From assembly GCA_002269645.1 (NCBI GenBank), contig NIVC01000280.1, positions 248,001-312,000 on the forward strand: a DNA stretch of 64,000 nucleotides. The letters are read 5' to 3'. The notes beneath the pieces are model-generated. The model was not told where the DNA came from. It worked only from the letters and a program-made list of their open reading frames with translations, and made no database searches. A program made the position numbers and the translations under genes. Position 1 is the stretch's first letter. Each line of letters opens with the position of its first letter. Source of the stretch: Macrostomum lignano (lineage: Eukaryota). Below are positions 1 to 55,323 of the stretch, piece by piece.

Positions 1-3000
1 TCAAATCCGCCAGCTCGGCGTTGCGGAGCTCCAGCATCGAGCTCAGCGAGCTGATCTCGTCTGGCAGGTGGCGGCGAATCGACTGGGAGGGATGAGAGTG
101 GGGATAATTATGGATTTGGTCAGGCTGGGAATCAGTTTGGTCAGGTTGGGGATCAGTTTGGTCAGGTTGGGAATCAGTTTGGTCAGGCTGGGGATCAGTT
201 TGGTCAGGTTGAGGATCAGTTTGGTCAGGTTGGGAATCAGTTTGGTCAGGCTGGGAATCAGTTTGGTCAGGTTGGGGATAAGTTTGGTCAGGCTGGGGAT
301 AAGTTTGGTCAGGCTGGGAATCAGTTTGGTCAGGCTGGGAATCAGTTTGGTCAGGCTGGGAATCAGTTTGGTCAGGCTGGGGATCAGTTTGGTCAGGCTG
401 GGAATCAGTTTGGTCAGGCTGGGGATCAGTTTGGTCAGGCTGGGAATCAGTTTGGTCAGGCTGGGGATAAGTTTGGGGATCAGTTTGGTCAGGTTGGGGG
501 ATCAGTTTGGTCAGGTTGGGAATCAGTTTGGTCAGGTTGGGGATAAGTTTGGTCAGGTTGGGGGATCAGTTTGGTCAGTTTGGGGATCAGTTTGGTCAGG
601 TTGGGGATCAGTTTGGTCAGGCTGGGGATAAGTTTGGGGATCAGTTTGGTCAGGTTGGGGATCAGTTTGGTCAGGCTGGGGATAAGTTTGGGGATCAGTT
701 TGGTCAGGTTGGGGATCAGTTTGGTCAGGCTGGGGATAAGTTTGGGGATCAGTTTGGTCAGGTTGGGAATCAGTTTGGTCAGGTTGGGAATCAGTTTGGT
801 CAGGCTGGGAATCAGTTTGGTCAGGTTGGGGATCAGTTTGGTCAGGTTGGGGATCAGTTTGGTCAGGTTGGGAATCAGTTTGGTCAGGCTGGGAATCAGT
901 TTGGTCAGGTTGGGAATCAGTTTGGTCAGGTTGGGAATCAGTTTGGTCAGGTTGGGAATCAGTTTGGTCAGGTTGGGGGATCAGTTTGGTCAGGTTGGGA
1001 ATCAGTTTGGTCAGGTTGGGAATCAGTTTGGTCAGGTTGGGGGATCAGTTTGGTCAGGTTGGGGGATCAGTTTGGTCAGGTTGGGAATCAGTTTGGTCAG
1101 GTTGGGGGATCAGTTTGGTCAGGCATGAAAATTCTGCTTAATTCTGCTTAAAAATCTGCTTTTTATATTACTGTAAGTAAAAATGATGGAACATTTTTGT
1201 TTCAGAAGAATGAAAATATTCAGACCTGCCCTGTGCTGTCCTCAGTCAGCGAGGCGAACTGCGCATGCAGCAGCTGCAGGTTGCCCGGCGACACGACTCG
1301 ATCGTCGTGCGACACGGTGGAGGACGGACTGGCGCACGCCTCGCCTGAGCTCGTTGAATTTGGCCGGAACGGCGACTCCCCGTCTGGCGACTGGGAAATG
1401 GGATTGCGGATTGGGATTTGAGGGAAGGGGCGAAATGGGTAACGGTATTTATTCTTGGTGGCGGCGTTGGAGACCTAAGGAAGGGAAATTGAGGATGGGG
1501 AAGTGGGGATGGGGAAGTGGGGATGGGGAAGTGGGGATGGGGAAGTGGGGATGGGGAAGTGGGGATGGGGAAGTGGGGATGGGGAAGTGGGGATGGGGAA
1601 GTGGGGATGCGGAAGTGGGGATGGGGAAGTGGGGATGGAAAAGTGGGGATGGGAAAGTGGGGATGGGAAAGTGGGGATGGGAAAGTGGGGATTGGGGAAG
1701 TAGGGATGGGGAAGTGGAGATGGGGAAGTGGGGATGGGGAAGTGGGGATGAGGAAGTGGGGATGGAAAATGTGGCGATGGGGAAGTGGGGATGGGGAAGT
1801 GGGGATGGGGAAGTGGGGATGGGGAAGTGAGGATGGGAAGTGGGGATGGGAAGTGGGGATATGGGAATGGCAAACAGACCTTGGCATCTGAGCTGTCGCT
1901 GAAGCCACTCCTTATCTTGAGCTCAGCGTAGGCGGCCTGCAAATCCTGCAGCTTTTTCTGAAAGAAGCAGATTAGTGACAGATTAGTGACAGATTAGTGA
2001 CAGATTAGTGACAGATTAGTGACATATTCAGATTAGTGACATATTCAGATTAGTGACAGATTCAGATTAGTGACAGATTCAGATTAGTGACAGATTCAGA
2101 TTAGTGACAGATTAGTGACAGATTAGTGACCGATTAGTTACAGCTGAGTCCACAACTCGATTATGCGGCAGGAAAATCGATCAGCAGCTTACGGTGAGGT
2201 GCGACTTCATGGCGTCAAATCGAACGCCAAGCTCGCGGACTTTGGCCTCGTGTTGGCGCTGCAGATCTGCGGGCGAGAGGCGAGAGGGAGGGGTAGATAG
2301 AGAGGGAGATTTGGACTGAGAGGATCAGGGAGACAGAGAGGAAGATGAGAAACAGAGAAGGCAGAGAGGGAGAGAAAAAGGGAGACAGAGAAGTAGGCAG
2401 AGAGGGAGACACAGAGGTTGAAAGAGGGAGAGAGGAAGACAGAGAGACAGAGAGGGAGACAGAGGGAGACAGAGAGGGAGACAGAGGGAGAGAGGGAGAC
2501 AGAGAGACAGAGAGGGAGACAGAGGGAGAGAGGGAGACAAAGGGAGAGAGGGAGACAGAGGGAGAGAGGGAGAAAGGGAGACAGAGGGAGAGAGGGAGAC
2601 AGAGAGGGAGACAGAGAGGGAGACAGAGGGAGGCAGAGAGGGAGACAGAGGGAGGCAGAGAGGGAGACAGAGGGAGGCAGAGAGGGAGACAGAGGGAGAG
2701 AGGGAGACAGAGGGAGAGAGGGAGAAAGGGAGACAGAGGGAGAGAGGGAGACAGAGGGAGAGAGGGAGACAGAGGGAGAGAGGGAGAAAGGGAGACAGAG
2801 GGAGAGAGGGAGACAGAGGGAGAGAGGGAGAAAGGGAGACAGAGGGAGAGAGGGAGAGACAGAGGGAGAGAGGGAGACAGAGGGAGAGAAGGAGAAAGGG
2901 AGACAGAGGGAGAGAAGGAGAAAGGGAGACAGAGGGAGAGAGGGAGACAGAGAGAGAGACAGAGAGGGAGACAGAGGGAGGCAGAGAGGGAGACAGAGGG

Positions 3001-6000
3001 AGGCAGAGAGGGAGACAGAGGGAGGCAGAGAGGGAGACAGAGGGAGAGAGGGAGACAGAGGGAGAGAGGGAGAAAGGGAGACAGAGGGAGAGAGGGAGAC
3101 AGAGGGAGAGAGGGAGACAGAGGGAGAGAGGGAGAAAGGGAGACAGAGGGAGAGAGGGAGACAGAGGGAGAGAGGGAGAAAGGGAGACAGAGGGAGAGAG
3201 GGAGACAGAGGGAGAGAGGGAGAAAGGGAGACAGAGGGAGAGAGGGAGACAGAGAGGGAGACAGAGAGGGGGACAGAGGGAGAGAGGGAGACAGAGGGAG
3301 GCAGAGAGGGAGACAGAGGGAGGCAGAGAGGGAGACAGAGGGAGACAGAAGGAGACAGAGAGGGAGACAGAGGGAGAGAGGGAGACAGAGGGAGGCAGAG
3401 AGGGAGAGAGAGGGAGACAGGTGTGAGTGAGAAGTCCAGTTAGCCACAGCAAGCCAGATTTTGGATTCAATGTGCGCAAGCTAGGGGTGGCAAAGTAGTA
3501 TCCCAGAGGCAGCTGTCAGTCAGTGCGGACACCTTGCTCCAGCTCTGCCAGCTGCCGCTGCGCAGCCGCCAGTTCTTCATCGTGCCGTTGTCGCTCCTCG
3601 TCGAGCTCGTCCTGCCGGGACTCCGCAACCGCCGACAGCTGCAAGCGGGGCGGCAGTGGGGGGTCAGGCCGGGGGTCAGTCATTAAGCGCAGTGCCGGAG
3701 GGGGGCTACCAGCAGGTGATGGCTAATGAGTTTAATCTCACACTGTCAAACAGTTAGCGGCAAACGGTTCGGTTAGAAAACTGGCTCATTAATTATGATA
3801 ATTAGTTAACCTTCCATGGCCAGGCGGTGCTGCAGTTTGCACTGTTCAAGCCGCTTGTCCGTGACTTTCTCCGAGGCCGTCTGGTGCGCGTCGTCCACGC
3901 TGGACCGGTGCCTCAGCTGGCGGCGGGTGGCGGCCAGTGCGATGGGGCCTCTGAGCCGCTGTCTGTTCCCCATCTGCCCTTCGCTTGCCTTCCTGACCGA
4001 TTCTGACTTTCTTGTCTCCCGCTCTCCCTCCCTCTCTGTCTCCCTCCCCATCTCCCCCTCTTTCCCCTCTGTCTCCCTCTCTGTCTCCCTCTGTGTCTCC
4101 CTCCCGATCTCCCCCTCTGTCCCCTCTGTCTCCCTCTCTGTCTCCCTCTCTGTTTCCCTCACTGTCTCCCTTTCTGTCTACCTCTCTGTCTCCCTCTCTG
4201 TCTCCCTCTCTATCTCCCTCTCTGTCTCCCTCTCTGTCTCCCTCTCTGTCTCCCTCTCTGTCTCCCTCTCTGTCTCCCTCTCTATCTCCCTTTCTGTCTC
4301 CCTCTCTGTCTCCCTCTCTGTCTCCCTCTCTATCTCCCTCTCTGTCTCCCTCTCTGTCTCCCTCTCTGTCTCCCTCTCTGTCTCCCTCTCTGTCTCCCTC
4401 TCTGTCTCCCTCTCTATCTCCCTCTCTGTCTCCCTCTCTATCTCCCTCTCTGTCTCCCTCTCTATCTCCCTCTCTGTCTCCCTCTCTGTCTCCCTCTCTA
4501 TCTCCCTCTCTGTCTCCCTCTCTGTCTCCCTCTCTGTCTCCCTCTCTATCTCCCTCTCTGTCTCCCTCTCTGTCTCCCTCTCTGTCTCCCTCTCTGTCTC
4601 CCTCTCTGTCTCCCTCTCTGTCTCCCTCTCTGTCTCCCTCTCTGTCTCCCTCTCTGTCTACCTGTCTCCCTCTACTCAGCGCTGACAGCCCCAGCTCACC
4701 TGGGCCTGGTGCGTGCTCTCCACAGCCTCCATCTGTTTGCGGTGCTGCTCCGCCAGCCGACTCAGCGCCTCGTCCCTCTCCTTCTCGATCATCAGGCGAG
4801 TGTTGCGGACCTCCCGGATCTGCGCCTCCCTGGCAGCGGCCAGCTCAGCCCGCTGGCAGCGGTCCCGCTCCGCCAGGTGTTCGGCGAAGCGACTCCGCGC
4901 CTCCGCCTCGCTTGCCTCGGCCGCCTCGGCCCGCCGCCGCTGCCGCTCCGCCTCCCGGCGCAGCCGAGGAGCCGAAAAGCCGTCCAGCTCGGCCGCCCGG
5001 CCGCACACCACCGCCAGGGCGTCGAAGGCCAGAAGGAGACGGCGCTGCTCTGCCATGGCGGCGTCCAGACTGACCTCCTTGTCCGCCAGCAGCACCTGCG
5101 GCGGAGTCCAGGGGATACAGCGTTTGAATTGCAGCCTTTTATGTAGAGCCTTGCCCATCTTCATCGGAATCCCCAGGTTCCACATCAGAATTGTCAGGTT
5201 CCACATTGGAATCCTCAGGTTCCCCATCAGAATCCTCAGGTTCCACATCGGAATCCTCAGGTTCCACATCGGAATCCTCAGGTTCCACATCGGAATCCTC
5301 AGGTTCCACATCGGAATCCTCAGGTTCCACATCGGAATCCTCAGGTTCCACATCGGAATCATCAGGTTCCACATCGGAATCCTCAGGTTCCTCATCGGAA
5401 TCCTCAGGTTCCACATCGGAATCCTCAGGTTCCACATCGGAATCCTCAGGTTCCTCATCGGAATCCTTAAGTTCCCCATTGGAATCTTCAGGCCCCCATC
5501 GTAACTCCAGCCCCACCCCATCCCCAGTCCCACCGCGCCACCGTCACCTGCAGGTCGCAGGCGGTCTGCTGCACGGAGTCCAGCTGAGCCCTGGCCGATG
5601 CGAGCTCCACGATGGTGGGCCGCCGGTGCTGCAGGACGCCTCCGTGATGCTGCTGAGTCAGGTGATGCTGGGAGCCGCCGGCCGGGGAGCTGCAGCCAGA
5701 CGAGGCCTTCGAACTGTTGGCGATCGAGCCGCGGCGTCCGGCACTGACGGCCGAAGGAGGCGGCCGCGCCCGACCAGGGGCTGACGGTGCGGCCTGAGAG
5801 GGGTTGGCGGGGCTCTGTGAGGATGCCAGGTGGGATTTGAGTGTCTGCAAGCTAGGTGTGCAGAGGTGTGCAGAGGTGTGCAGAGTTGTGCAGAGTTGTG
5901 CAGAGGTGTGCAGAGGTGTGCAGAGGTGTGCAGAGTTGTGCAGAGGTGTGCAGAGGTGTGCAGAGGTGTGCAGAGGTGTGCAGAGGTGTGCAGAGTTGTG

Positions 6001-6845
6001 CAGAGGTGTGCAGAGGTGTGCAGAGGTGTGCAGAGGTGTGCAGAGGTGTGCAGAGGTGTGCAGAGGTGTGCAGTAGAGGTGTGCAGAGGTGTGCAGCAGA
6101 GGTGTGCAGAGGTGTGCAGAGTTGTGCAGAGGTGTGCAGCAGAGGTGTGCAGAGGTGTGCAGAGTTGTACAGCAGAGGTGTGCGGAGGTGTGCAGAGGTG
6201 TGCAGAGGTGTGCAGAGGTGTGCAGCAGAGGTGTGCAGAGGTGTGCAGAGTTGTACAGCAGAGGTGTGCAGAGTTGTGCAGCAGAGGTGTGCAGAGGTGT
6301 GCAGAGGTGTGCAGAGGTGTGCAGAGGTGTACAGGGGAGATTTTAAAAGGTTTGTATAAAATATTTTGACAGAATCAGTTGAAATTACCAATAGGATTTG
6401 ATGATTAGCAAATAAGAAAATGTCGCCGAATCTATAAAAACATTTTTACGTTCACGAAATCACGGAACTAGCTACTGATAGCCACTACCACTAGTAGTAT
6501 GCAGCGTGCTTGAATATTAATCAAAAGGAAATATTCGAGCAAACAGTGAGGACAATGGGAACAAAGTTCTCTACCTGGATCGAAGGATAGGTCCCGTTAG
6601 TCTAAAACAGCACCGCCAGAGCTCATAATAAGGTAAGGCAAAAATTTCACACTGAAAAAATATTCACGCAGAATTTAACAACTCTGACAAACCTTCGACA
6701 ATTTTTTAGCGACCCCGGCGGCGCCGCTGCGGCTCGAGGAAGCCACTGACGAAGTTGAGGAGGCCGCCGTGACGGGGGAGCCGGTTGCCTTGGCAACCAG
6801 ACGCGACTGCTGCGGAACCCCTGACGGCCGAACTGCAGCGGGCAT
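1..6845 (-). CDS. Coiled-coil protein, MTUS1/MTUS2/CCDC69-like (3' part of gene; continues off the left edge)
   Basis: GT-AG exons 6693-6845, 5548-5793, 4700-5095, ~3811-3957 (uncertain), 3533-3638, 2193-2266, 1880-1957, 1226-1390, <1-82. Peptides LLLAFDALAVVCGR and DEISSLSSMLELRNAELADL resemble the MTUS1 coiled-coil motifs KFEALTVVIQH and QELESLKAVLEIKN (recalled similarity, no search run). Phases are consistent except around the 3811 exon. Confidence 0.6.
115..1123. repeat. Intronic minisatellite, 21-bp unit GGG(G/A)ATCAGTTTGGTCAGG(T/C)T
   Basis: Direct tandem copies visible. Confidence 0.95.
1495..1866. repeat. Intronic minisatellite, 14-bp unit GGGGAAGTGGGGAT
   Basis: Direct tandem copies. 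Confidence 0.95.
1969..2141. repeat. Intronic minisatellite, 11-bp unit AGATTAGTGAC with longer variants
   Basis: Direct tandem copies. Confidence 0.9.
2277..3420. repeat. GA-rich repeat (AGAGGGAGAC/AGAGGGAGAG units) with higher-order blocks
   Basis: Purine-dominated tandem tract. Confidence 0.95.
4024..4672. repeat. CT-rich 12-bp repeat TCTCCCTCTCT(G/A)
   Basis: Direct tandem copies. Confidence 0.95.
5163..5483. repeat. 21-bp repeat GGAATCCTCAGGTTCCACATC
   Basis: Direct tandem copies. Confidence 0.95.
5856..6330. repeat. 10-bp repeat GTGTGCAGAG
   Basis: Direct tandem copies. Confidence 0.95.
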
Positions 6846-6906
6846 GGGGCATTTTTTGGAGTTTAACAACGGTCTTCAAATAGATTTTTTCGAATGTTCA
6901 ATTGGG

Positions 6907-6910
6907 AAAA
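6907..6910 (-). terminator. Pol III terminator (T4) of the tRNA gene
   Basis: Minus strand reads ...GGTCCA CTTA TTTT; the T run starts 5 nt after the discriminator base. Confidence 0.55.
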
Positions 6911-6914
6911 TAAG

Positions 6915-6989
6915 TGGACCTGGCGGGGTTCGAACCCGCGACCTTTGGATTTTAAGTCCAACGTTCTAACCAACTGAGACTACAGGCCC
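6915..6989 (-). tRNA. tRNA gene, anticodon UAA (Leu by anticodon), class I short variable loop, Ala-type acceptor stem
   Basis: Reverse complement GGGCCTG TA GTCTC AGTTGGTTA GAAC G TTGGA CTTAAAA TCCAA AGGTC GCGGG TTCGAAC CCCGC CAGGTCC A folds as a cloverleaf with perfect anticodon and T stems and one bulged base in the D stem. A and B boxes present; no encoded CCA tail. Confidence 0.85.
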
Positions 6990-7377
6990 GCTGACAAATC
7001 GAGACTTTTTGTTGCATTTAATTTGACCAATTCATCATAAACTTTTTACTTGGGAATTCCAATCACAAATATAGCTGCAATACGCCAAACTCCTACTGAC
7101 AGTAGGAAATGCGCACATTTGCTGTATTACGCCCTGCCAGTTAGATCTATTTTTAGACTGACAGGCTCTGCCTATGCACCGGCTTGCTTTTACGCCGATA
7201 AAGTTTCGCAGAGTGCAAGGAACAACCATAGCCAGCTAACTTAAAAAAGTTCATTCTTCTAAAAAATACTCTTGAAATGCTCAGTAAGAAACAAGCGCGA
7301 ACTATGGCTACACTGGGTTGTTTATCCCACTCTTTTTAATCCCCATTTTCCTTGTTATCCAGTCGAAAGTCGCTCAC

Positions 7378-9339
7378 CGCCAGGTCTGGCCAGCGATGAC
7401 GAGGCACAGGCAGCCGCCGTCGGGACCGCCCGCTTGACTGCCTGGCTGCCGACCGCCTGAGGCGGCGACTTCAGCTTTGTCGGCACTGTTGCTGTTGACG
7501 GAGTCGGCAGGGCCGACTGTCGCCTTGACGACGCGGTCGTTGAACTCTTAGTCGCAGCGGCAGATGCGGCGGTGCTGGCGGCGCTGGCAGCTTCGGAGGC
7601 CGGCACGCTGGCGCGCCGATTTGAATTCGAACTTGAAGCATTCGAAGTAGGCGTCTTCAAAGTCGGTGGCTTTGAAGTTGCCGCTGTTGCTGCTTGCCTA
7701 GCAACCGCTGCCGGTCTGGCCCAGCCGACAGACGAGGGAGGCGGAAGGCCGCTAGACCGCCTTGCTGCCGGCGACGGTGACGAAGCGACAGTCGGGGACG
7801 CCACAGCTGCCGCCGACGTTTTGGTCGATTTTGGCGTCACCGGCGTCACCGTCTGCGGCTTTCGCAGTCCCGTAGGGGTTTTTAGCGAGGTTGCTGGCGC
7901 TGGCGCAGGTGCTGGCGCAGGTGCGGGCGCTGGCGCGGGTGCTGGCGCGGGTGCTGGGGTGGATTCAAAGCTGTCAGCTGTGGTGCGAGTGGTCCTGTCA
8001 TCCGATTCTGTAGGGCAGTAGCCTGAAGATTGAGAATGGTAAAATATGAGAAAATAGCGCCTTAAAAAGTCTGCAGGGTGTTCTGCAGGATGTCTGCATG
8101 TGTCTCAGGGTGTCTCAGAGTCTGCTGAGTGTCTGCAGGGTGTTCTGCAGGGTGTCTCAGAGTCTGCAGGGTGTCTGCAGGGTGTTCTGCAGGGTGTCTC
8201 AGAGTCTGCAGGGTGTCTGCAAGGGTGTGTGCATGTGTCTCAGGGTGTCTGCAGGGTGTCTTAGACTGTGCAGGGTGTCTGCATGATGTCTCAGAGTCTG
8301 CAGGGTGTCTGCAAGGGTGTGTGCATGTGTCTCAGGGTGTCTGCAGGGTGTCTCAGAGTCTGCAGGGTGTCTGCAAGGGTGTGTGCATGTGTCTCAGGGT
8401 GTCTGCAGGGTGTCTTAGACTGTGCAGGGTGTCTGCATGATGTCTCAGAGTCTGCAGGGTGTCTGCAAGGGTGTGTGCATGTGTCTCAGGGTGTCTGCAG
8501 GGTGTCTCAGAGTTTGCAGGGTGTCTTAAAGTCTGCAGGGTGTCTGCAGAGTGTCTCAGTATCTGCAGTATGTCTCAGAGTCTGCAGGGTGTCTGCGGGG
8601 TGTCTCAGAGACTGCGGGGTGTCTCAAAGGCTGCAGGGTGTCTGCAGGGTGTCCTAAAGTCTGTATGGTGTCTGCAGGGTGTCTACAGGGTGGTCTGCAG
8701 GGTGGTCTGCAGGGTGTCTCAAAGCCCGCAGGCCCCCAGCGCACCCGTATCGGCGCTGTCGGCGGCTCCCTCCATTTCGGCCACCGCGGCAGCCACCGCG
8801 GCCGCCTCGGCGACAATGATGTCGTGAAAGTCGGCGTCGCTGGGCGGCTCCGGCGGCTCGAGGCTGAAGGTGTTGCGCCGCTGCCGTTGGCGAGGCGTGG
8901 TCGCTGCGGCGTCGCCGTCCTCGTCGCTGCAGTTGGCGTCAGCAGCGGTGGCGCCGGCGGCCGCGGGCTGCGGCGGATTCTCCGCGGGTACCGCCTTCTG
9001 CGCCGAGACTGTCGGCAGCTTTGACGAAGCCGACGAAGGCGCCAGGACTCGAACTCCGGACGGTGCCGACGGCAGGGTGAGGCGCGACTTCTTGCCGGGG
9101 TAGCCGACGGACAGCTCTGTCCCGGAGTTTGGCGAGCAGCTGGACTCTGACTGGCCGCTGCGACCGGCGGCGGGGTCGGGCGGGCTGGCCGGCACGAACA
9201 CCTTGTTGGGGTGCTGCATGCGCAAGGGGGACACCAACCCGCTGCCGCTGCCGCTGCCGCTGCCTGAGACGGTGGAGACGCTGCCTGGCTGAGGCAGTCG
9301 AGAAGTGCGACAGTCCTGAAGTTCATTTGCGGTTAGCGA
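7378..9339 (-). CDS. Two large Ser/Ala/Pro/Thr-rich exons, probably the disordered N-terminal part of the MTUS-like gene
   Basis: Exons 8745-9339 (595 nt, phase 0 to 1) and 7378-8022 (645 nt, phase 1 to 1) join in frame with canonical GT/AG. First in-frame ATG at 9219 (MQHPNKVFV). Junction to the 6693 exon not resolved. Confidence 0.55.
8068..8718. repeat. Mosaic repeat of GGGTGTCTGCA and GTCTCAGAGTCTGCA subunits
   Basis: Irregular tandem subunits with longer duplicated blocks. Confidence 0.85.
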
Positions 9340-12109: not shown

Positions 12110-15100
12110 CTAGCTGGAGTCCGACTGGGCCACGCCGACCGCCCGAGAAAAGCCGGGCAGGTCGCGCGCCTCAACCAGCGCTTTCAGGGCCGTCACGCGG
12201 TCGCCAGTTGACGAAGTGGACGATGGTTCGAAGGCCATCCGAGCCACGGTCTGTCTGGCGAGGTTCCACACCGAGCTGTCGGACTGACGGCCAGGCTGCA
12301 GCAGCCGCAGGGCAGAAGCGTAGTTGCTGAGGGCCTGCGCGAGTTATGAAGGAAAATACGCTGTTTTTTCGTGTAGAAATGTTAAAAAATAGCTCAGACT
12401 GTAGCCTAATTATTAGGTCAGAGTGAAGCCTAATTATTAGCTCAGACTGTAGCCTAATTATTAGGTCAGAGTGAAGCCTAATTATTAGCTCAGACTGTAG
12501 CCTAATTATTAGCTCAGACTGTAGCCTAATTATTAGCTCAGACTGTAGCCTAATTATTAGCTCAGACTGTAGCCTAATTATTATCTCAGACTGTAGCCTA
12601 ATTATTAGCTCAGACTGTAGCCTAGTTATTAGCTCAGACTGTAGCCTAATTATTAGCTCAGACTGTAGTCTAATTATTAGCTCAGACTGTAGCCTAATTA
12701 TTAGCTCAGACGGAAGCCTAATTATTAGCTCAGACTGTAGCCTAGTTATTAGCTCACACTGTAGCCTAATTATTAGCTCAGACTGTAGTCTAATTATTAT
12801 CTCAGACTGTAGCCTAATTATTAGCTCAGACGGAAGCCTAATTATTAGCTCAGACTGTAGCCTAGTTATTAGCTCAGACTTAGCCTAATTATTAGCTCAG
12901 ACTGTAGCCTAATTATTATCTCAGACTGTAGCCTAATTATTAGCTCAGACGGAAGCCTAGTTATTAACTCAGACTGTAGCCTAATTATTAGCTCAGACTG
13001 TAGCCTAATTATTATCTCAGACTGTAGCCTAATTATTAGCTCAGACGAAAGCCTAGTTATTAACTCAGACTGTAGCCTAATTATTAGCTCAGACTGTAGC
13101 CTAATTATTATCTCAGACTGTAGCCTAATTATTAGCTCAGACGAAAGCCTAATTATTAGCTCAGACTGTAGCCTAGTTATTAGCTCAGACTGTAGCCTAA
13201 TTATTAGCTCAGACTGTAGCCTAGTTATTAGCTCAGACTGTAGCTTAATTATTAGCTCAGACTGTAGCCTAATTATTAGCTCAGACTGTAGCCTAGTTGT
13301 TAGCTCAGACTGTAGCTTAATTATTATCTCAGACTGTAGCCTAATTATTAGCTCAGACTGTAGCCTAGTTGTTAGCTCAGACTGTAGCCTAATTATTACC
13401 CTAGACTGTAGCCTAATTATTAGCTCAGACTGTAGCCTAATTATTAGCTCAGACTGTAGCCTAGTTGTTAGCTCAGACTGTAGCTTAATTATTATCTCAG
13501 ACTGTAGCCTAATTATTAGCTCAGACTGTAGCCTAGTTGTTAGCTCAGACTGTAGCCTAATTATTACCCTAGACTGTAGCCTAATTATTAGCTCAGACTG
13601 TAGCCTAATTATTAGCTCAGACTGTAGCCTAGTTGTTAGCTCAGACAGTAGCCTAGTTGTTAGCTCAGACTGTAGCCTAATTATTAGCTCAGACTGCAGC
13701 CCAATTATTAGCCAAGTCAATTATCTCAAACCTGGTCGTAGGCGCGCAGACTGTGGCAGGCGATGCCCAGATTGGCGCGGGCGCGCACAAAGCCGGGCGC
13801 CAGGCTGAGGGCGCGCCTGTAGGCCTGCACAGCCTCCTCGTGACGGCCGCTGTTAGCCAGAGTGGCGCCCAGCTTATTCCAGCTCAGGTAGTCATCTGGC
13901 TGCACCTGTGAGAGTGGTAAAATATCATATTTCTATATTAACTACTGCCTATTGACTAAAAGTTAAGCTGACTGGCTGCGGTTAGTACGCTAGAGTGCTT
14001 TTGCCTGACAATTAGAAAGTCAAGTGCCGCTGTACTACTACCAATTACCAATTTGCTATGCCATTTGGCACGCGTATACGCCTCACCCAGTGCCAGTGCA
14101 AATCAGTCTCACCTGCAGCGCAGCCTTGAAGGAGTCCACAGCCCGCTGGAAGTCGCCGTGCAGGTTGTACAGCACACCCAACGCCAGCTGCAGCTCCGGG
14201 TCGGGCGAGCCGGCCGTCTGCCTCGCCGCCGCGGCCAGCAGCAGCCGCTCGCAGCGGGAGAACTCCGCGTAGGTGGCGAACCCGCCAACGGTTGGCGCGG
14301 CGGCTTCGGCGGAGTCGGCGGAGGCACCGGCCAGCAGGTCGGAGTAGGCGGGATTGGCGGCCAGCCAGGACAGCAGGGCGTGGACGGCCTCGGAGTTGCG
14401 CAGCTCGTTGGTGAAGCTGCGCGCCAACGACAGCAGGGCCGGGCGGTCCTGCGGCGACAGAGACAGGCAGCGCTGGCAGGCGGTGATGGCGTCCGGCTCG
14501 CGCTCCGCCTCGGCCAGGCTGATGCCCAGGTGGCGCCACGCCTCCGCGCTGTCCGGGGCCCGGGCGGCGGCCGCCTCAAACAGCAGGACGGCTTCGGGCA
14601 CGCGGCCTTGGCGCATCGCGGCCAGCCCTGCGCCCAGCGGGTCCGCCTCCTCCGCGTGCGGGTTGTCGGCCTGGGGGGGGGGGAGGGAGGATCTGTGAGA
14701 GTGGCTGAGGATCTGTGAGGGTGGCTGAGGATCTGTGAGGGTGGCTGAGGATCTGTGAGAGTGGCTGAGGATCTGTGAGGGTGGCTGAGGATCTGTGAGA
14801 GTGGCTGAGGATCTTTGAGGGTGGCTGAGGATCTGTGAGGGTGGCTGAGGATCTGTGAGGGTGGCTGAGGATCTGTGAGAGTGGCTGAGGATCTGTGAGG
14901 GTGGCTGAGGATCTGTGAGAGTGGCTGAGGATCTGTGAGGGTGGCTGAGGATCTGTGAGGGTGGCTGAGGATCTGTGAGAGTGGCTGAGGATCTGTGAGG
15001 GTGGCTGAGGATCTGTGAGAGTGGCTGAGGATCTGTGAGGGTGGCTGAGGATCTGTGAGGGTGGCTGAGGATCTGAGAAGACAGTAGCCCAGCCTGAGGA

Positions 15101-18100
15101 TCTGTGGGTGTCCCTGAGGAGCTGAGAAGACAGTAGCCCAGCCTGAGGATCTGTGGGTGTCCCTGAGGAGCTGAGAAGACAGTAGCCCAGCCTGTGGATC
15201 TGTGGGTGTCCCTGAGGAGCTGAGAAGACAGTAGCCCAGCCTGAGGATCTGTGGGTGTCCCTGAGGATCTGAGAAGACAGTAGCCCAGCCTGAGGATCTG
15301 TGGGTGTCCCTGAGGAGCTGAGAAGACAGTAGCCCAGCCTGAGGATCTGTGGGTGTCCCTGAGGATCTGAGAAGACAGTAGCCCAGCCTGTGGATCTGTG
15401 GGTGTCCTTGAGGAGCTGAGAAGATAGTAGCCCAGCCTGAGGATCTGTAAAGGTGACAGTGGCCAGAGCATCTGGACAGGCTCACCTGAAAGACGTATTC
15501 ACGTTTCGTCTCACTGGCGGACGCAGTGGCAGAGGCGGCGCCGGCCGCTCCCAGGGTGTCGTCGTCCAGGTACTGGGACCAGGTGCGGGACAGGTCCTCC
15601 CAGAAGCGGTCCTTCTCGGCGTCAGTCTCCGTGTAGGTGCCGGACCGCAGCTGCTCCAGAGCGCTGGCCAGCCGCTCCTCGGGCTGGTGGTCCATGTCAG
15701 TGTCCATGTCGTCGGTCAGTTGGGCGGAGTCGGCCGGCAGCAGCAGGTGGTCCCGCTCGGCCAGGAAGTTGGCGCCCCAGCTCGGCTGTTGCACGGAGGC
15801 GGCGGCCGGCGGCGCGGCCGGCAGCAGCATCGGGGCGGAGGGCCCGCGCAGCATCATCAGGGGGAGGCCCAGCGACTGCGGCGCGGCCGCAGCTGAGGAT
15901 TGGCCAGACATTCTGTTGACTTGCCAGCTTGATATTCCCTATCGAAATCTAATCTCACCCTTATCGATCTAATCTCACCCTTCCCAATCTAATCTCACCC
16001 TTCTCGGTCTAATCTCACCCTTCTCAATCTAATCTCACCCTTCTCGGTCTAATCTCACCCCTTCCTTAATCCAATCTCAACCCGCATTTTTAATATTATG
16101 ATTAAAGGAATAATAGACCATCTATTATCTAATCTAACCATCTCGGGCAATCATATTTCATCATTCTAGCTGTCTCATATCACACCATTGTTCCAACCTT
16201 ATCTCAGCCTTTCTGATAATCTCACCACACCATCCCAGCCAAGCCTCACCGGTGGCCGCTGACGGCAGAGAAGGTGTGGACGCGGACACGTGAAACGCAG
16301 AGGCGGCGGAGGCAGCCGAGGATGTCGCTGCTGCTGCGGCGGCTGCCGGCACAGACGAGGCGGCAGAGAAGGCGAGCGCTTCAGCCAGCAGAGCCTGCAT
16401 GTTGAACGTCTGCGGGGCCGCAGTCGCCGCCGTAGCACCCTGGTGAGCGGGGGGTTTTTGAGCTTGGTGAGCTGCATGCTGCACCCAAATCCTCCACCCT
16501 AATCCTCGGCCCTTCAATCATCCAACCCCCAATTCTCGGCCCCTCAACCCTCAGCCTCTCAACCCTCAGCCTCCCAACCCTCAGCCTCCCAACCCTCAGC
16601 CTCCCAACCCTCAGCCTCCCAACCCTCAGCCTCCCAACCCTCAGCCTCCCAACCCTCAGCCCCTTAACCCTCAGCCTCTCAACCCTCAGCCTCTCAACCC
16701 CCAGCCCCCAATCCTCCACCCTCCCCAATCCTCCACCCTCCCCAATCCTCCACCCTCCCCAATCCTCCACCCTCCCCAATCCTCCACCCTTCCCAATCCT
16801 CCACCCTCCCCAATCCTCCACCCTTCCCAATCCTCCACCCTCCCCAATCCTCCACCCTCCCCAATCCTCCACCCTTCCCAATCCTCCACCCTCCCCAATC
16901 CTCCACCCTTCCCAATCCTCCACCCTCCCCAATCCTCCACCCTCCCCAATCCTCCACCCTCCCCAATCCTCCACCCTCCCAATCCTCCACCCTCCCCAAT
17001 CCTCCACCCTCCCCAATCCTCCACCCTTCCCAATCCTCCACCCTCCCCAATCCTCCATCCTCCCCAATCCTCCACCCTCCCCAATCCTCCATCCTCCCCA
17101 ATCCTCCACCCTCCCCTTCCCAATCCTCCACCCTCCCCTTCCCAATCCTCCACCCTCCCCAATCCTCCACCCTCCCCAATCCTCCACCCTTCCCAATCCT
17201 CCACCCTCCCCAATCCTCCACCCTCCCCAATCCTCCACCCTTTCCAATCCTCCACCCTTTCCAATCCTCCACCCTTTCCAATCCTCCACCCTTTCCAATC
17301 CTCCACCCTTCCCAATCCTCCACCCTTCCCAATCCTCCACCCTCCCCAATCCTCCATCCTCCCCAATCCTCCATCCTCCCCAATCCTCCATCCTCCCCAA
17401 TCCTCCACCCTCCCCAATCCTCCATCCTCCCCAATCCTCCACCCTCCCCTTCCCAATCCTCCACCCTCCCCAATCCTCCACCCTCCCCTCCCCAATCCTC
17501 CACCCTCCCCAATCCTCCACCCTCCCCAATCCTCCACCCTCCCCAATCCTCCACCCTTTCCAATCCTCCACCCTTCCCAATCCTCCACCCTTTCCAATCC
17601 TCCACCCTTCCCAATCCTCCACCCTCCCCAATCCTCCACCCTCCCCAATCCTCCACCCTTTCCAATCCTCCACCCTTCCCAATCCTCCACCCTCCTCAAT
17701 CCTCCACCCTCCCCAATCCTCCACCCTCCCCAATCCTCCACCCTCCCCAATCCTCCACCCTCCCCAATCCTCCACCCTCCCCAATCCTCCACCCTCCCCA
17801 ATCCTCCACCCTCCCCAATCCTCCACCCTCCCCAATCCTCCACCCTCCCCTTCCCAATCCTCCACCCTCCCCAATCCTCCACCCTCCCCAATCCTCCACC
17901 CTCCCCAATCCTCCACCCTCCCCAATCCTCCACCCTCCCCAATCCTCCACCCTCCCCAATCCTCCACCCTCCCCAATCCTCCACCCTCCCCAATCCTCCA
18001 CCCTCCCCAATCCTCCACCCTTCCCAATCCTCCGCGAACCTGCAGCTGCTGCGCCCGCACGGCCTGCTGGCCGACCTCCTGCCTGTGCGCCTGGTCGCCA

Positions 18101-18186
18101 CGGGTCACGTGCTGGCTGAGGCTGACCAGTGCGTTCTGGCCGGAGCAGCCGGGCTCGGCCAGCCGGCGGGCCAGGGACTCGGCCAT
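12110..18186 (-). CDS. PEX5: Peroxisomal targeting signal 1 receptor PEX5 (TPR protein), about 575 aa
   Basis: Six phase-consistent exons: 18040-18186, 16250-16439, 15486-15919, 14113-14670, 13732-13905, 12110-12334. N-terminal [20 protein letters not shown] carries the conserved Cys; WGANF motif; TPRs [18 protein letters not shown] and [25 protein letters not shown]; C-terminal VWNL...ARDL. Confidence 0.93.
12392..13712. repeat. 24-bp repeat TAGCTCAGACTGTAGCCTAATTAT (last PEX5 intron)
   Basis: About 55 tandem copies. Confidence 0.95.
14690..15447. repeat. Compound array: 19-bp GTGGCTGAGGATCTGTGAG followed by a 49-bp unit
   Basis: Switch near 15073; both units share CTGAGGATCTG. Confidence 0.9.
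15947..16078. repeat. Short ~20-bp repeat ATCTAATCTCACCCTTCTC(GG/A)
   Basis: About six degenerate copies. Confidence 0.8.
16544..18032. repeat. Compound array: 15-bp AACCCTCAGCCTCCC then 17-bp CCCCAATCCTCCACCCT (PEX5 intron 1)
   Basis: Direct tandem copies running to within about 6 nt of the donor site. Confidence 0.95.
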
Positions 18187-25833: not shown

Positions 25834-28800
25834 CTAGGCTGGCGAAGACTCCTTCGCATCGCTGTTGCCGCCTTTAGCGCAGTGGTGGCGCCGCTCGCGC
25901 ATGAAGACGCGGAAGCGGCCGGGGTCCGCCAGATCTGGCTGCACATGCAGCGTGTACTTTGACTCGCTCTCCATCTGTGCGACCATCTGGTGAGAGAGTG
26001 GAGGAATAAATATTATATGTTAAGACCCGATAAGCTCTTCTCGGTACTCGATAAGTAGATTGGCAGTTGGATAAGTAGATTGGCAATTGGATAAGTAGAT
26101 TGGCAGTTGGATAAGTAGATTGGCAGTTGGATAAGTAGATTGACAGTTGAATGAGTAGATTGGCAGTTGGATGAGTAGATTGGCAGTTGGATAAGTAGAT
26201 TGACAGTTGAATGAGTAGATTGGCAGTTGGATGAGTAGATTGGCATTTATATAAGTAAATTAGCAGATAGATGAGCCTATTGGTAGATGGATGGGAAGAT
26301 AAAAATTTCGTTTTATTTGTAAAATAATTTGCAGCACCACCACTGTCGAGTCTGGCTCACCTCATCCGTAATGCACACGGCAATGCTGGTTGGGCCATAG
26401 ACAAGCACCTGAGAGATCTTGTCGCCGTCAGCTTGAAACAGGCTGGTGATTCGGTTGAACAGTTCCTCGTAGGTGAGCTGGGACAGGTAGACTGGGTGGA
26501 ACACTGCAGTGGGCGGGATTGAGAACAGTGGGTTGTAGGACAAATCTCAGGCAGTGTGTAACTGGAGTCTCAGGCAGTGTGTGACTGGAGTCTCAGGCAG
26601 TGTGTGACTGGAGTCTCAGGCAGTGTGTGAGTGGAGTCGCAGGCAGTGTGTGAGTGGAGTCTCAGGCAGTGTGTGAGTGGAGTCTCAGGCAGTGTGTGAC
26701 TGGAGTCTCAGGCAGTGTGACTGGAGTCTCAGGCAGTGTGTGACTGGAGTCTCAGGCAGTGTGTGACTGGAGTCTCAGGCAGTGTGTGACTGGAATCTTA
26801 GGCAGTGTGTGACTGGAGTCTCAGGCAGTGTGTGACTGGAATCTCAGGCAGTGTGTGACTGGAGTCTCAGGCAATGTGTGACTGGAGTCTCAGGCAGTGT
26901 GTGACTGGAGTCTCAGGCAGTGTGTGACTGGAGTCTCAGGCAGTGTGTGACTGGAGTCTCAGGCAGTGTGACTGGATTCAGGCAGTGTGTGACTGGAGTC
27001 TCAGACAGTGTGTGACTGGAGTCTCAGGCAGTGTGTGTTGTTTATAGTATATAGCTCGTACTTTTAGTACTTTATATAGTAATTGTCAGATACATAATAT
27101 TGATTAATATTGTTAATACAAATAGCTGTGCGTATCCCTTTCTAGAAAGTTCAATAAATATTCAATACAGTATCGTACCGATATATCTATGGTTGTTAGT
27201 TCATATCGCAAATACGCTAATACTTTAAGTGCCCCCCCAAACTGCTCAATTTTTCATCTTGTGTATTTCTTTTTGTTCAAACTGATAAAATATACTTAAT
27301 TAAAAGAAGCAAACTTCAACAGGTTATGGGCCCAGCCGAGGCCACTGCGAGTACTTCGATGTACTAGATCATTCTGGTAATCTGGTTGTTCGTGCCATCT
27401 GGAAACTTGATCGCTCGGTCGATCAGTTACGTTGCTATGGCTGCAAGCGAAGAAAAATGGCACATAGAGAAGCTCACGAAGGACAATTGGATGACGTGGA
27501 AAATCCAAATGAAACATTGCTTAATCGCAAGAAGACTCTGGGGCATAGCTACCGGAGATGTTCTTCAGCAAGACGCAAATGAAGCACGACGCAATGAATT
27601 CAAGGAACAGCAACAGCGAGCAGCAGCAATATAGTTCTGTCTCTCAGCAGTGAGTACATCTACCTTGTGACTACATGCGATGATGATCCGAGGCAGATGT
27701 GGCAAATTTTATGTGGTCATTTCGAACGTGACTCGACTGCCAACAAGTTGTTTTTGAAGAAAAAACTATTTAGACTGCAGATGACTGATGGGACTCCAGT
27801 TCAGGAGCACATTCGCTGTCTGAAGGAGTTAACTGACAAGCTGGCGTCCATTAATGCTGCTGTGTCTGACGAAGACCAGGTTGTGATTCTTCTTAGCAGT
27901 CTACCTGACAGCTACAGTCATCTGGTTACGGCTCTGGAGACCCGAAAGGAAGAGGAGCTGACTTTGCTGACGGTTCAACAAGCACTGCTTAATGAAGAAA
28001 TGAAACGAAGTGAAACTATGAAATACGAATCCCGTGATTCGGAATCTGCTCTTCGTGTTGACAAATTTAAGGGACGCAGACCAATTAAGTGCTACACATG
28101 TGGCAAGGAAGGACACTTCAGTAGAGAGTGCAGGTTCAACGTGAGCAACAGGCAGCAAAACTCAAAATCGACTCTGCATAAAGCTAAAACTGCAGAAAGT
28201 ACGAGTCATTCGAATCCGAACCTGGACAACGAGATAGCCGATAGTGCCGCTACATTTCTTACCTCTGAAGAAACTGGTCCTCAGGACACAACTGCACGGT
28301 GGATAATTGACTCTGGTGCGACAAGACATATGACCTGTCAAAGGAATGCTCTAAAAGACTACACTGAATTCGATGAACCGGAAAATGTAGGGCTCGGAGA
28401 CGGGCGAACAGTTCAAGCTTACGGAACTGGACGAGTGAACATCGTCACGAGACTCCCTGGTGGTGAGCGTTCTAACGCAGTACTTGGATCTGTACTTTTC
28501 GTACCTAGACTAGCCTGCAATCTGTTCAGTGTACGTGCGGCTACACTTAAGAACAATGTCATTCAGTTTGGTCACACTAGGTGCTGGATTCGAAACCAAA
28601 CAGGGAAGCTAGTAGGCTTTGGAACACTAGTTGATCGATTGTACCAACTTGAGTGTGATGTAGATTGCAACTTAGCTACAGCTGCAGTAACGACTACAAA
28701 GTCAGAGCTCGAAACTGCCAATTTGTGGCATCATCGTCTAGGACATCTCCACAGAAATCAACTCGAACAACTATTCAAGAAAAGGTACGTCGAGGGTACT

Positions 28801-31800
28801 GACACTTCCATTGTGAGTGATATGAATTTCTGTGAAGCGTGCGTTGAAGGAAAGGCGCATCGAAAGAATCACAAATCAGTGGGAGAAATTCGCTCATCAG
28901 AAGTACTGCAACTTGTGCACAGTGACATTTGTGGACCAATGCAGACGCAGTCGTTTGGCGGGAATCGATTTTTTGCGACTTTCATCGATGACTTCTCTCG
29001 CATTGTGAAGGTCTATTTTCTGAAGACTAAGTCTGAAGTCTTCCAGAAGTTTAAGGAATTCGAAGCGCAGGTGACAAATGAGACTGAAAAAACAATAAAA
29101 GTTCTCCGAACTGATGGTGGAGGAGAGTACATGTCCAAGGAATTTTCTGCGTTTTTACTTGCAAAAGGAATTCGACACGAAATTTCGGTAGCCCACACAC
29201 CAGAACAGAACGGTGTTGCTGAAAGAATGAACCGTACTCTCATCGAACCTGCTAGAACAATGATAACTCATGCTGGTCTTAGCAATGCTTATTGGGCAGA
29301 AGCCATCAACACAGCTGCGTATATCCGCAACAGAGTCCCGACGAACTCGGTAGCGCCAATGATGACACCCTACGAAAGATGGTGTGGACGAAAGCCAAAC
29401 ATCTCACATCTTCGAACGTTTGGCTGTGTAGCTTATGCTCACATTCCTACAGTAGAGAGACAAAAACTTGATAAGAAGACTACCAAGCTAAGGTTCGTTG
29501 GCTACAGTGACAATCAAAAGGGCTACAGATTGTTTGACGAAAGAACTAGGAAAACAGTTGTTCGTTACGATGTCATCTTCAATGAGGGAGACTTCGGAAA
29601 GTTGAATGATTTCCAGCAGAACAATGAAAAGATAAATTCACATATGGAAGTCAACCTCGACGAGCACAACAGCCGAAAAACTCCGAATGAAGAAATTGAA
29701 ACTGAAATCCAACAAATTCTGCCAACGACCACGCGACAAAGGAAAACCCCAGAGCGTTTTCAATACAATGAGAACTTCGAAGTAGCTAGCCTAAGTACAA
29801 CAGAGCCACAACATCGTGCTTTTCGAGCCATGGAGATTTTGGAACCCAGATCGATTGACGAGGCTTGGAGTTGTGACAATGCGAAGGAATGGAAAGAAGC
29901 AACAGACTCGGAATACAACTCTCTGATAGAAAATGATACGTGGGAATTAGTTCCTCTTCCAGAAGGACGAAAGACTGTTGGCTGCAAGTGGGTATTCAAA
30001 GTGAAGCATGACAGCTGCGGAAACATTGAACGATTCAAAGGACGCCTGGTTGCCAAAGGGTATTCTCAACAACCTGGAGTGGATTATGACGAGACGTTTT
30101 CTTCTGTGGTAAGATTCTCATCAATCCGTACTATACTGGCATTCGCAACTCAACGAGAAATGCACATTCATCAAATGGATGTGGTCACTGCATTTCTAAA
30201 CGGACATTTAACAGAAGAAATCTTCATGGATCAACCACCCGGATACGTTAAATGCGACGAAGAGAATTTAGTCTGCAAGCTGAAAAGATCGCTATATGGT
30301 CTAAAGCAATCACCCCGGTGTTGGAACAAGGCCCTCTGTGATTACCTAATCTCGATTGGATTCAAGGAAAGTGGAGCAGACCCATGTGTGTTCACTCGCA
30401 AACTTGGAAACATGTCAATCATTGCGGTTTATGTTGACGACTGGTGATGGCTACTGATACTATGGATGAAATGCAGAGTATCAAGGAGGAATTCACTCGA
30501 CGATTCAAGATGAAAGATATGGGAGAGCTTCATTACTGTTTAGGAGTGACAATAGTGATTGACTCAGAGAGACGATTTCTTCAACTTCATCAGAAGCAAT
30601 ACATTATGCAACTACTGAAGAAGTTTAAAATGTTGGAAGCAAACCCAGCCACAACCCCAATGGATTCAAGCGTCAAGCTCGTTGAAAACGATGGCTACAG
30701 CAAATTCGTGGATCCAAAGGCCTATCAATCAATTGTAGGCAGCCTATTGTACGCAGCGATCGCTACACGGCCAGACATTGCTCAAGCAGTGGGAGCAGTA
30801 TCGAAATTCAATTCCAAACCAACTGAGGCTCATCTCACCGCTGCCAAGAGAATTCTTCGATACCTGAAAGGCTCATCGGACGTCGTTCTGAAATATGAGA
30901 AGTCTGGAAGTAACGAGATCATTGGCTACTCAGACGCTGATTGGGCGTCGGACTTGGATAGCAGACGCTCAGTCACTGGAAGTGTTTTCATTATGGCCGG
31001 TGGAGCAGTAACATGGTTAAGTCAAAAGCAAACCACGGTGGCGTTGTCAACGACAGAAGCTGAGTACATGGCCCTTGCGTCTGCGACACAGGAGGCAATA
31101 TGGCTTCGTCGACTTGTAAGCGATTTGGGTGCCAATGTCACTGGGTCAACTGTAATTAAGGAAGACAATCAAGGAGCCATTGCAATGTCAAAAAATCCGA
31201 TTCGACACAAGCGGACAAAGCATATTGACATCCGCTATCATTTTATTCGAGATGCTATTCAAGCTGGTACTGTGAAACTGGAATACTGTCCGACAAAGGA
31301 AATGCTGGCGGACATTCTAACAAAGCCAATTCCCAGGCATCAGTTTGAAAATCTGCGATCAATGCTTGGTATTAAGTGTATGGATATGAATTGAAGTAAC
31401 TGGAGTAACTGAAGTAACTAATGTCATTGTCATCCATTTTTAATATCAGAGACTACTGAGTAATCTACCGCGATTAACTTAAATCTTCCAATGATAAGTT
31501 TCTGACAATTAAGTGGGAGTGTTGTTTATAGTATATAGCTCGTACTTTTAGTACTTTATATAGTAATTGTCAGATACATAATATTGATTAATATTGTTAA
31601 TGCAAATAGCTGTGCGTATCCCTTTCTAGAAAGTTCAATAAATATTCAATACAGTATCGTACTGATATATCTATGGTTGTTAGTTCATATCGCAAATACG
31701 CTAATACTTTAAGTGCCCCCCCAAACTGCTCAATTTTTCATCTTGTGTATTTCTTTTTGTTCAAACTGATAAAATATACTTAATTAAAAGAAGCAAACTT

Positions 31801-54305: not shown

Positions 54306-55323
54306 TCTTAAGGTCAGCCAGACCAACCGATCAAACAGAGCAACCAGTTTAACCTTGCTTTAGGAGGGATGCAGAATAAAAAAGTTCGCTTGCTCTTTAA
54401 TTATATATTTTACTCTAACAGTGGTGCAAAACTGGATTATTATTATTTTAAAGTGCTTAAAACCGTGTGACACACAGACAGAACTGCTTGTTGCTAGGAT
54501 ATAAAATAGTCCAAAAGAACGCAGCATAAAGTACGTATATAACTAAACAATATAGCATTAAAAAGCCGACAATTATAATAACAAGCATAGGCTAAAAAGT
54601 TGAATTGCACAATCGCATTTTTAACAAATTGAAAGTAACGAAAAAAACTGAAAAAATAAAACACAAGCGCTTAAAGATAAAGAGAAAAAAACTTGAGAGA
54701 AGGGGGAATAAAAGTGAAATTTGCAACAACAAAAATGAAGCGGTTAAACGCCTATCCAACTTGAAAAACACAGCTGACCGAATCAAGGATGAACTGTCAC
54801 TCACTGTCACTGCCGTTGCTAGAGTCAATTTTATTGCAAGTCAATCCGAAATTTTGCATGAATATTTATACGTTAATTTATGTTAATATCAACCACTCAT
54901 GCCCGAGGTAACAGAGGTAACGAAGATAGAAGCGGGGCTCAATTGAAAATAAAGCATTTAACAACAACACTGAAAGCAAAATTTTGCAACACACTAATTG
55001 ATGAATTGCTGAGACTGAAAACGCAAACTGCTTTATAGCAAATAAAAATGTTGTAAAACCACAGCTTTAAGCAATTTAAAACAGTGCACTACATGACTAG
55101 TTGTGAGTCTGATACCAAGCCAGCTAAATTAGCGGCATAACAGAACAAACTATATCGATTTTTCAAATGAGAAAGCCGAGCTGACTACGAGAGACAGGAT
55201 TAGCGAGTGTAACAGACTACACATTGAATAAGTTTACTTGGTAAAGTTCAATAAACAGTAGTGTGTTTCTTAGTCATCATTTAAACACGCTCAGTTAGTC
55301 GGACACTTGTTTTAAATAAGCCA

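Follow-up and report, generated by a model that had tools for sequence, protein, structure and literature searches.

A class I tRNA gene combining a UAA anticodon with G3:U70 in three homeologous Macrostomum lignano loci may be a partly degraded, anticodon-shifted copy

The window analysed here, a 64-kb stretch of DNA from the free-living flatworm Macrostomum lignano that corresponds to NIVC01000280.1:248001-312000 of assembly GCA_002269645.1, contains a single tRNA gene according to ARAGORN, which called a tRNA-Leu(taa) at 6914-6989 on the minus strand. The Rfam model RF00005 matched the same strand end to end at 6915-6989 (65.8 bits, E 4e-12, model positions 1-71 of 71), with a gathering score of 29. 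By annotation, the gene is spanned by a protein-coding host gene that begins at window position 9315, and the minus-strand neighbours are, in order, WASH, a 164-aa gene, a PEX5-like TPR gene and the 5′-partial host gene with its 1037-aa product. The features of the locus are the following.

2110-9315, minus strand: annotated part of the 5′-partial host gene (1037-aa product), continuing below 2110; from the called genes of L027, L003 and L004
6833-7377, minus strand: putative 545-nt intron of the host gene holding the tRNA in sense; from splice consensus and a frame open over the junction
6915-6989, minus strand: 75-nt class I tRNA gene, anticodon UAA; from ARAGORN, Rfam RF00005 and reading of the sequence
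6952-6954, minus strand: anticodon U34 A35 A36 in the loop C32 U33 UAA A37 A38; from the Rfam alignment and ARAGORN
6918, minus strand: U70, wobble partner of G3 (6987); acceptor stem GGGCCUG/CAGGUCC+A read directly
6978 or 6979, minus strand: additional base on the 5′ side of the D stem (GU[C]UC facing GAAC), an insertion in the Rfam alignment
6926-6936, minus strand: B-box-like GGTTCGAACCC, T stem and loop; read directly
6907-6910, minus strand: T4 run, candidate Pol III terminator, beginning 5 nt past A73 (...GGTCCA CTTA TTTT CC)
68-1151, 2215-3479, 3816-5073, 5139-5784, 5830-6391, 12869-13720, 16400-18050 and 55300-56830: tandem arrays in introns or intergenic DNA

Read as RNA, the 5′ half of the tRNA is GGGCCUG UA GU(C)UC AGUUGGUUA GAAC G UUGGA CUUAAAA, and the 3′ half continues UCCAA AGGUC GCGGG UUCGAAC CCCGC CAGGUCC A. 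The acceptor stem has seven pairs in total, among them G1:C72, G2:C71 and G3:U70, and is followed by the discriminator A73 at 6915; the variable loop is 5 nt long (AGGUC), and the D arm is of the class I type, with four pairs and a bulge. The bases that make tertiary interactions are all there (U8, A14, G15:C48, G18 G19, A21, G26, U33, G46, U54 U55 C56, A58 and C61), and the gene has a G+C content of 55% and a canonical, cytosolic-type D/T-loop core. The cloverleaf, the conserved D- and T-loop bases and a score above the gathering score place it in the tRNA family. Every anatomical element named in an earlier, sequence-only reading of this DNA (UAA, G3:U70, A73, short variable loop, D-stem bulge and T-run) could be read in the sequence. 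That reading had also described intact A and B boxes, which holds for one of the two: a B-box-like stretch is there at 6926-6936, judged against the Pol III type 2 promoter consensus, whereas the A box is interrupted by the D-stem extra base, which falls within the A-box region 6970-6982.

Because the splice consensus fits (donor GTGAGC at 7377, acceptor CTGCAG ending at 6833) and the reading frame stays open across the junction, the tRNA appears to sit in sense orientation within a host-gene intron of 545 nt and 82 nt upstream of the acceptor. Elsewhere in the neighbourhood, the WASH-domain ORF shares 100% identity with M. lignano BOX15_Mlig001600g3. The product of the PEX5-like gene (12110-18186, minus strand) is annotated with 566 aa here, with 442 aa in L002 and L003 and with 300 aa in L004; these length differences are a matter of inconsistent annotation, and the genes themselves are alike, with almost identical shared exons. 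An older paralogous region of 33 kb (L026, NIVC01000430.1:67162-100627) holds a GRHL-like gene, WASH (53% identical) and a 158-aa gene in that order, which suggests an earlier duplication of the region; neither a PEX5-like gene nor a tRNA was called in it. The tandem arrays are open on both strands, and several of the longest ORFs of the window are arrays rather than genes. One array is in frame with a 14-3-3 exon (55295-57505, minus strand; 210 profile-matching residues), yielding a spurious 736-aa ORF; as the exon lacks the first 13 profile positions, the 14-3-3 gene probably has an upstream exon.

M. lignano has been described as a hidden polyploid (PMC10468722). Using a reconstructed spliced PEX5 model of a second contig, confirmed by exact-sequence look-up, we reached two other contigs of the same assembly that carry the tRNA syntenically (L003, 17875-17949; L004, 17026-17100), which makes three homeologous loci. 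In all three, the tRNA lies at an equal distance downstream of the PEX5-like gene and within the same host gene, and UAA, G3:U70, A73 and the D-stem bulge are common to the copies. Because the UAA, U70 and bulge base calls are repeated in two other contigs, they are not sequencing errors, and because these unusual features are common to three loci, the tRNA gene is older than the approximately 2% divergence of the copies. The copies differ at four positions of the tRNA.

6963, minus strand: C25, which pairs with G10; A in L003 and L004, where the pair is broken
6956, minus strand: variable site C32/U; U in L003 and L004
6929, minus strand: variable site A59/G; G in L003 and L004
6922, minus strand: variable site C66/U; U in L004 only, giving G7:U66

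The Rfam score of 65.8 bits for the window copy compares with 58.2 and 54.8 for the two homeologous copies. Downstream of the tRNA, L003 and L004 have an uninterrupted T7 (CTTTTTTTCC), whereas in the window copy the run is split by an A (TTATTTT, within 6907-6914), leaving a minimal T4. A search allowing up to three mismatches in the T arm returned no further tRNA copies in the 64-kb window, and none were found in the approximately 150 kb of other M. lignano DNA that was examined. ENA contigs with WASH homologues were not syntenic and contained no tRNA. Protein homology searches with a PEX5 exon and a putative host-gene exon gave no match and missed even the annotated protein of the animal itself; since exact look-up found that PEX5 protein in the searched collection, and the queries were Ala-rich or coiled-coil, a blank in these searches does not mean absence.

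We aligned approximately 2.9 kb around the three copies and counted variable sites in the tRNA and in the flanking columns outside the tandem arrays, that is, in non-repeat sequence. Among the three copies, 4 of 75 tRNA positions vary (5.3%), compared with 34 of 1497 flank positions (2.3%), and about 8% of 75-nt flank windows contain at least four variable sites. The expected number of changes in the tRNA is 1.7 and the observed number is 4, with a one-sided P of about 0.09 and little power at approximately 2% divergence. Under normal purifying selection, about zero variable sites would be expected in a tRNA gene. The tRNA gene is thus no better conserved than the presumably neutral intron DNA and, if anything, less so. 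One of the changes breaks the structure, since C25 to A in L003 and L004 abolishes the universal G10:C25 pair, and the remaining three, at positions 32 and 59 and from G7:C66 to G7:U66, are compatible with it. A rate not below that of the neutral flanks together with a structure-breaking change is the pattern of an unconstrained copy, here seen with low power at approximately 2% divergence. The sequence-only reading had proposed that a singleton decayed pseudogene would overturn its interpretation; the gene is not a singleton, having three homeologous copies, but the decay half of that proposal finds support in the lack of purifying selection and the loss of G10:C25 in two of them.

Three further points bear on how these counts are to be read. 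If the consensus-like states are ancestral, the three to four substitutions all belong to the L003/L004 lineage and the window copy has none, and such a lineage skew fits a retained copy with decaying duplicates as well as it fits chance. Transcribed tRNA genes mutate faster than their surroundings (PMC13010820), so an excess of changes could signal transcription rather than death. Finally, UAA and U70 would be kept by default over approximately 2% divergence, and their retention is therefore uninformative.

The folding energies point to a marginal structure. For the window copy, the cloverleaf has an energy of −21.6 kcal/mol, compared with −25.2 kcal/mol for the minimum-energy fold (z = −1.7 against shuffles), and the gap between cloverleaf and minimum ranges from 3.6 to 7.6 kcal/mol across the three copies, with the value of 7.6 in L003 and L004. 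A hypothetical variant without the D-stem insertion and with G24 and C70 would have a cloverleaf of −30.5 kcal/mol, within 0.4 of its minimum-energy fold. The cloverleaf had been called near-perfect, a description weakened by the bulge in the A box and by a minimum-energy fold other than the cloverleaf.

Which isotype the body comes from is less readily told than the anatomy. Only G3:U70 and A73 point to alanine; both are found in all three copies, and the anticodon is UAA instead of the NGC of tRNA-Ala. From cytosolic class II tRNA-Leu, the gene has A73 and a leucine anticodon, and it lacks the long variable arm (>10 nt), G37 and the three-pair, large-loop D arm (class II features, with G37 as m1G37, after PMC9976931 and general knowledge); position 37 is A. 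We scanned public metagenome contigs for the core that spans positions 26-58, with G26 and T-loop A58 as its ends and the anticodon arm and variable loop in between, leaving the anticodon free. The scan returned 19 loci, whose readable anticodons were UCU and CCG (Arg), GUG (His) and CAU (Met), several of the UCU loci being trailed by T-runs like eukaryotic genes; neither UAA nor an Ala anticodon occurred among the 19. Outside the forced core, only 53-62 of 75 positions were shared with the flatworm tRNA, too few to name a parent isotype. The exact anticodon arm is also present in a bacterial tRNA-Leu(UAA) (PMC1904245), which was the sole match in a literature search with strings of the tRNA sequence; guessed ancestral 5′ halves gave none, and the exact anticodon arm was absent from the viral contigs searched. 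Anticodon stem, variable loop and T stem together form a generic module of class I tRNAs. The idea of an alanine body is not supported by these comparisons, as the two acceptor-end elements are all that suggest alanine and the core is met with Arg, His and Met anticodons. Nor is the resemblance to tRNA-Phe, offered earlier as a pointer to origin, diagnostic, because the core occurs with several anticodons and the arm is found in the bacterial tRNA-Leu(UAA).

As regards charging, G3:U70 is the dominant determinant for AlaRS, which does not read the anticodon (PMC8583063, PMC9976931), and on this point the sequence-only reading relied on established knowledge. If a mature transcript is made, AlaRS would most likely be its charger through G3:U70 and A73, and expression could plausibly lead to alanine charging and a rare Leu-to-Ala misreading. 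The long variable arm had been treated as something that LeuRS requires, which is too strong: minimal substrates are leucylated in E. coli and human without the long arm or the anticodon, A73 and the tertiary contacts of the D and T loops being enough, and class I tRNA-Leu(UUR) is a substrate of mitochondrial LeuRS, which uses A73 and A14 (PMC9976931). Leucine or dual charging of the flatworm tRNA, which has A73 and A14 but A37 in place of G37, is conceivable. We also counted codons. TTA makes up 1 of 1136 codons in the host exons of the window (exons placed by homology or annotation; GC3 0.82) and 9 of 1244 codons in two copia ORFs, including the in-frame GAG TTA ACT at 27826-27834, so TTA is rarer in the host exons than in the copia sequence, as had been claimed, albeit in a small sample. 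That a UUA misreader would preferentially hit transposon proteins is a conjecture from these codon counts only. The copia-type polyprotein itself (27667-31394, plus strand) consists of two ORFs that overlap by 4 nt at 30444-30447; since RVT_2 profile positions 1-170 match the end of the first and 174-242 the start of the second, this copia copy is frameshifted in its RT.

On balance, we lean towards reading the gene as a tRNA gene copy that has shifted its anticodon, has partly degraded and is under little or no constraint, and not as a new decoding system. It would be a nuclear, Pol III-type gene, lying in sense within what is probably an intron of a protein-coding gene, and an off-type class I tRNA copy that had acquired the UAA anticodon, G3:U70 and the one-base D-stem insertion before the recent genome duplication; G3:U70 could have arisen from a G3:C70 pair by a single C70-to-U transition. 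After the duplication, the copies would have diverged by drift, at roughly the neutral pace or above it, and such drift is what makes the gene look like a tRNA gene relic or orphan isodecoder rather than a maintained decoder. It probably contributes little or nothing to translation. If it were nonetheless matured and charged by AlaRS, it would be a weak Leu-to-Ala misreader of UUA and UUG, codons that the host genes of the window almost never use. The state of the window copy does not sit easily with decay: a score of 65.8 bits, tertiary bases, a B box and a T-run are unusual for an old pseudogene.

The same retained features (tertiary bases, B box and T-run in the window copy; G3:U70, G1:C72, G2:C71 and A73 in all three copies) are what a working mistranslator would need, that is, a transcribed tRNA charged by AlaRS through G3:U70 and A73 that inserts alanine at a low level at UUA and perhaps UUG. 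We regard such a decoder as unlikely. AlaRS ignores the anticodon (PMC8583063, PMC9976931), the near absence of UUA from the host codons (1/1136) would keep the cost small, and natural ambiguous decoders are known in the nev-tRNAs (PMC3333845) and the CUG-Ala yeasts (PMC5951914); however, there is no excess of conservation over the flanks, two of the three copies have a broken D stem, the A box carries a bulge and the cloverleaf is marginal. Moreover, an animal deacylase, ATD, removes alanine mischarged on tRNA-Thr (PMC7302879). The fuller version, in which the window copy is maintained, expressed and AlaRS-charged, UUA and UUG are ambiguously Leu and Ala with the burden mainly on AT-richer transposon genes, and the homeologous copies are decaying duplicates, we consider highly improbable. 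A tRNA-shaped element that does not decode, be it an intronic Pol III unit that affects the host gene as a chromatin boundary or by transcriptional interference, a place where RNase P/Z cuts the host pre-mRNA, or a producer of small RNAs, would account for the sense placement in an annotated gene 82 nt upstream of the putative acceptor, for the position kept in three homeologous copies and for the B box and T-run. We think it quite unlikely, since 98% identity over the whole region is enough to explain the shared position, nothing points specifically to such a role, and roles of this kind need neither UAA nor G3:U70.

It is very unlikely that the gene is a class I leucine tRNA that LeuRS, either the cytosolic enzyme or the mitochondrial one after import, charges so that UUA is read correctly. 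A73, A14, G18 G19, U54:A58 and A35 are in place, and the anticodon arm is identical in a bona fide bacterial tRNA-Leu(UAA), but position 37 is A where G37 is important for yeast leucylation, G3:U70 would attract AlaRS regardless of LeuRS, and the same absence of a conservation excess over the flanks applies. The leucine gene missing from the mitochondrial genome is L1, which, following the usual MITOS naming, we take to be the CUN and not the UUR decoder, so that there is no evident tie between it and the nuclear UAA gene; import to make up for a missing mt trnL1 was ranked low as an idea, the anticodon being the wrong one. Two reports give only 21 tRNAs for the M. lignano mtDNA, with tRNA L1 not detected, and likewise for M. 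hystrix (PMC5446695, PMC10468722), and it is this absence of one tRNA-Leu gene in M. lignano (PMC5446695), together with the leucylation of minimal substrates that lack the long arm and the precedent of mitochondrial LeuRS (PMC9976931), that speaks for a leucine tRNA, whereas all known cytosolic tRNA-Leu are class II (PMC9976931). That the gene is the head of a tRNA-derived SINE or another dispersed repeat is most unlikely, although M. lignano has a repeat-rich genome and tandem arrays abound in the window, which also holds a copia element. The T-run 5 nt past the 3′ end leaves no room for a SINE body, neither a target-site duplication nor a flanking repeat turned up, and the terminator position and lack of flanking repeats are the reasons for the low rank of a SINE origin. 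In addition, each homeologous locus has one copy, the approximately 150 kb of other M. lignano DNA examined has none, and the Rfam score is far above that of typical SINE heads.

The anticodon-shifted copy that we favour is of a kind that annotators meet regularly, namely a tRNA gene with a high score and a conflict between anticodon and identity elements. Because this one was caught shortly after a whole-genome duplication, the absence of constraint is directly measurable. The case counsels caution, as a clean cloverleaf and one identity element do not amount to evidence for a new decoding function. Expression and charging with alanine, if they occur, would make it an uncommon natural example of an ambiguous sense codon in an animal, perhaps an initial stage of codon reassignment, and the animal mirror-image counterpart of the nematode nev-tRNAs.

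Among described systems, the closest category is that of anticodon-shifted or isotype-conflict tRNA genes (PMC3923123). tRNAscan-SE 2.0 flags isotype-conflict genes as unusual and probably not functional, and they are not to be assumed to be pseudogenes (PMC8450103). Like the alloacceptor-shifted tRNAs (PMC3923123, PMC8450103), the flatworm gene is a high-scoring nuclear gene in which the anticodon conflicts with the rest and the functional status is uncertain, and it is retained syntenically in duplicated loci; unlike them, it adds an alanine determinant in the acceptor stem and a D-stem insertion.

The nev-tRNAs of nematodes, whose misincorporation has reportedly been examined in a published study, share with it an animal nuclear origin, a mismatch between body and anticodon, and leucine as one partner. 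They have a class II body, are charged with leucine and carry Gly or Ile anticodons (PMC3333845), whereas the flatworm gene reverses this arrangement, with a leucine anticodon on a class I body, and thus lacks the nev-tRNA combination of a class II body, a long variable arm and an anticodon for neither Leu nor Ser. Furthermore, conservation of the nev-tRNAs extends across nematodes, and both their expression and their mischarging in vitro have been demonstrated (PMC3333845).

The tRNA-Ala(CAG) of the CUG-Ala yeast Pachysolen (PMC5951914) likewise combines a codon of the Leu box with alanine identity through G3:U70. It has a genuine alanine body, is conserved and is the sole decoder of a reassigned codon (PMC5951914), whereas the flatworm body does not look like that of a tRNA-Ala and there is no sign of a reassignment. 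An acceptor-stem G:U pair as a route to mischarging also links the gene to the non-Ala animal tRNAs that are mischarged by AlaRS and to ATD (PMC8583063, PMC7302879); those tRNA-Thr and tRNA-Cys have G4:U69 and are otherwise normal and expressed, whereas the flatworm gene has the pair at the canonical 3:70 position and is structurally defective. With animal mitochondrial tRNA-Leu(UUR), finally, it shares the class I form, UAA, A73 and A14, and it differs in being nuclear and presumably intronic, with 55% G+C and a full D/T-loop core.
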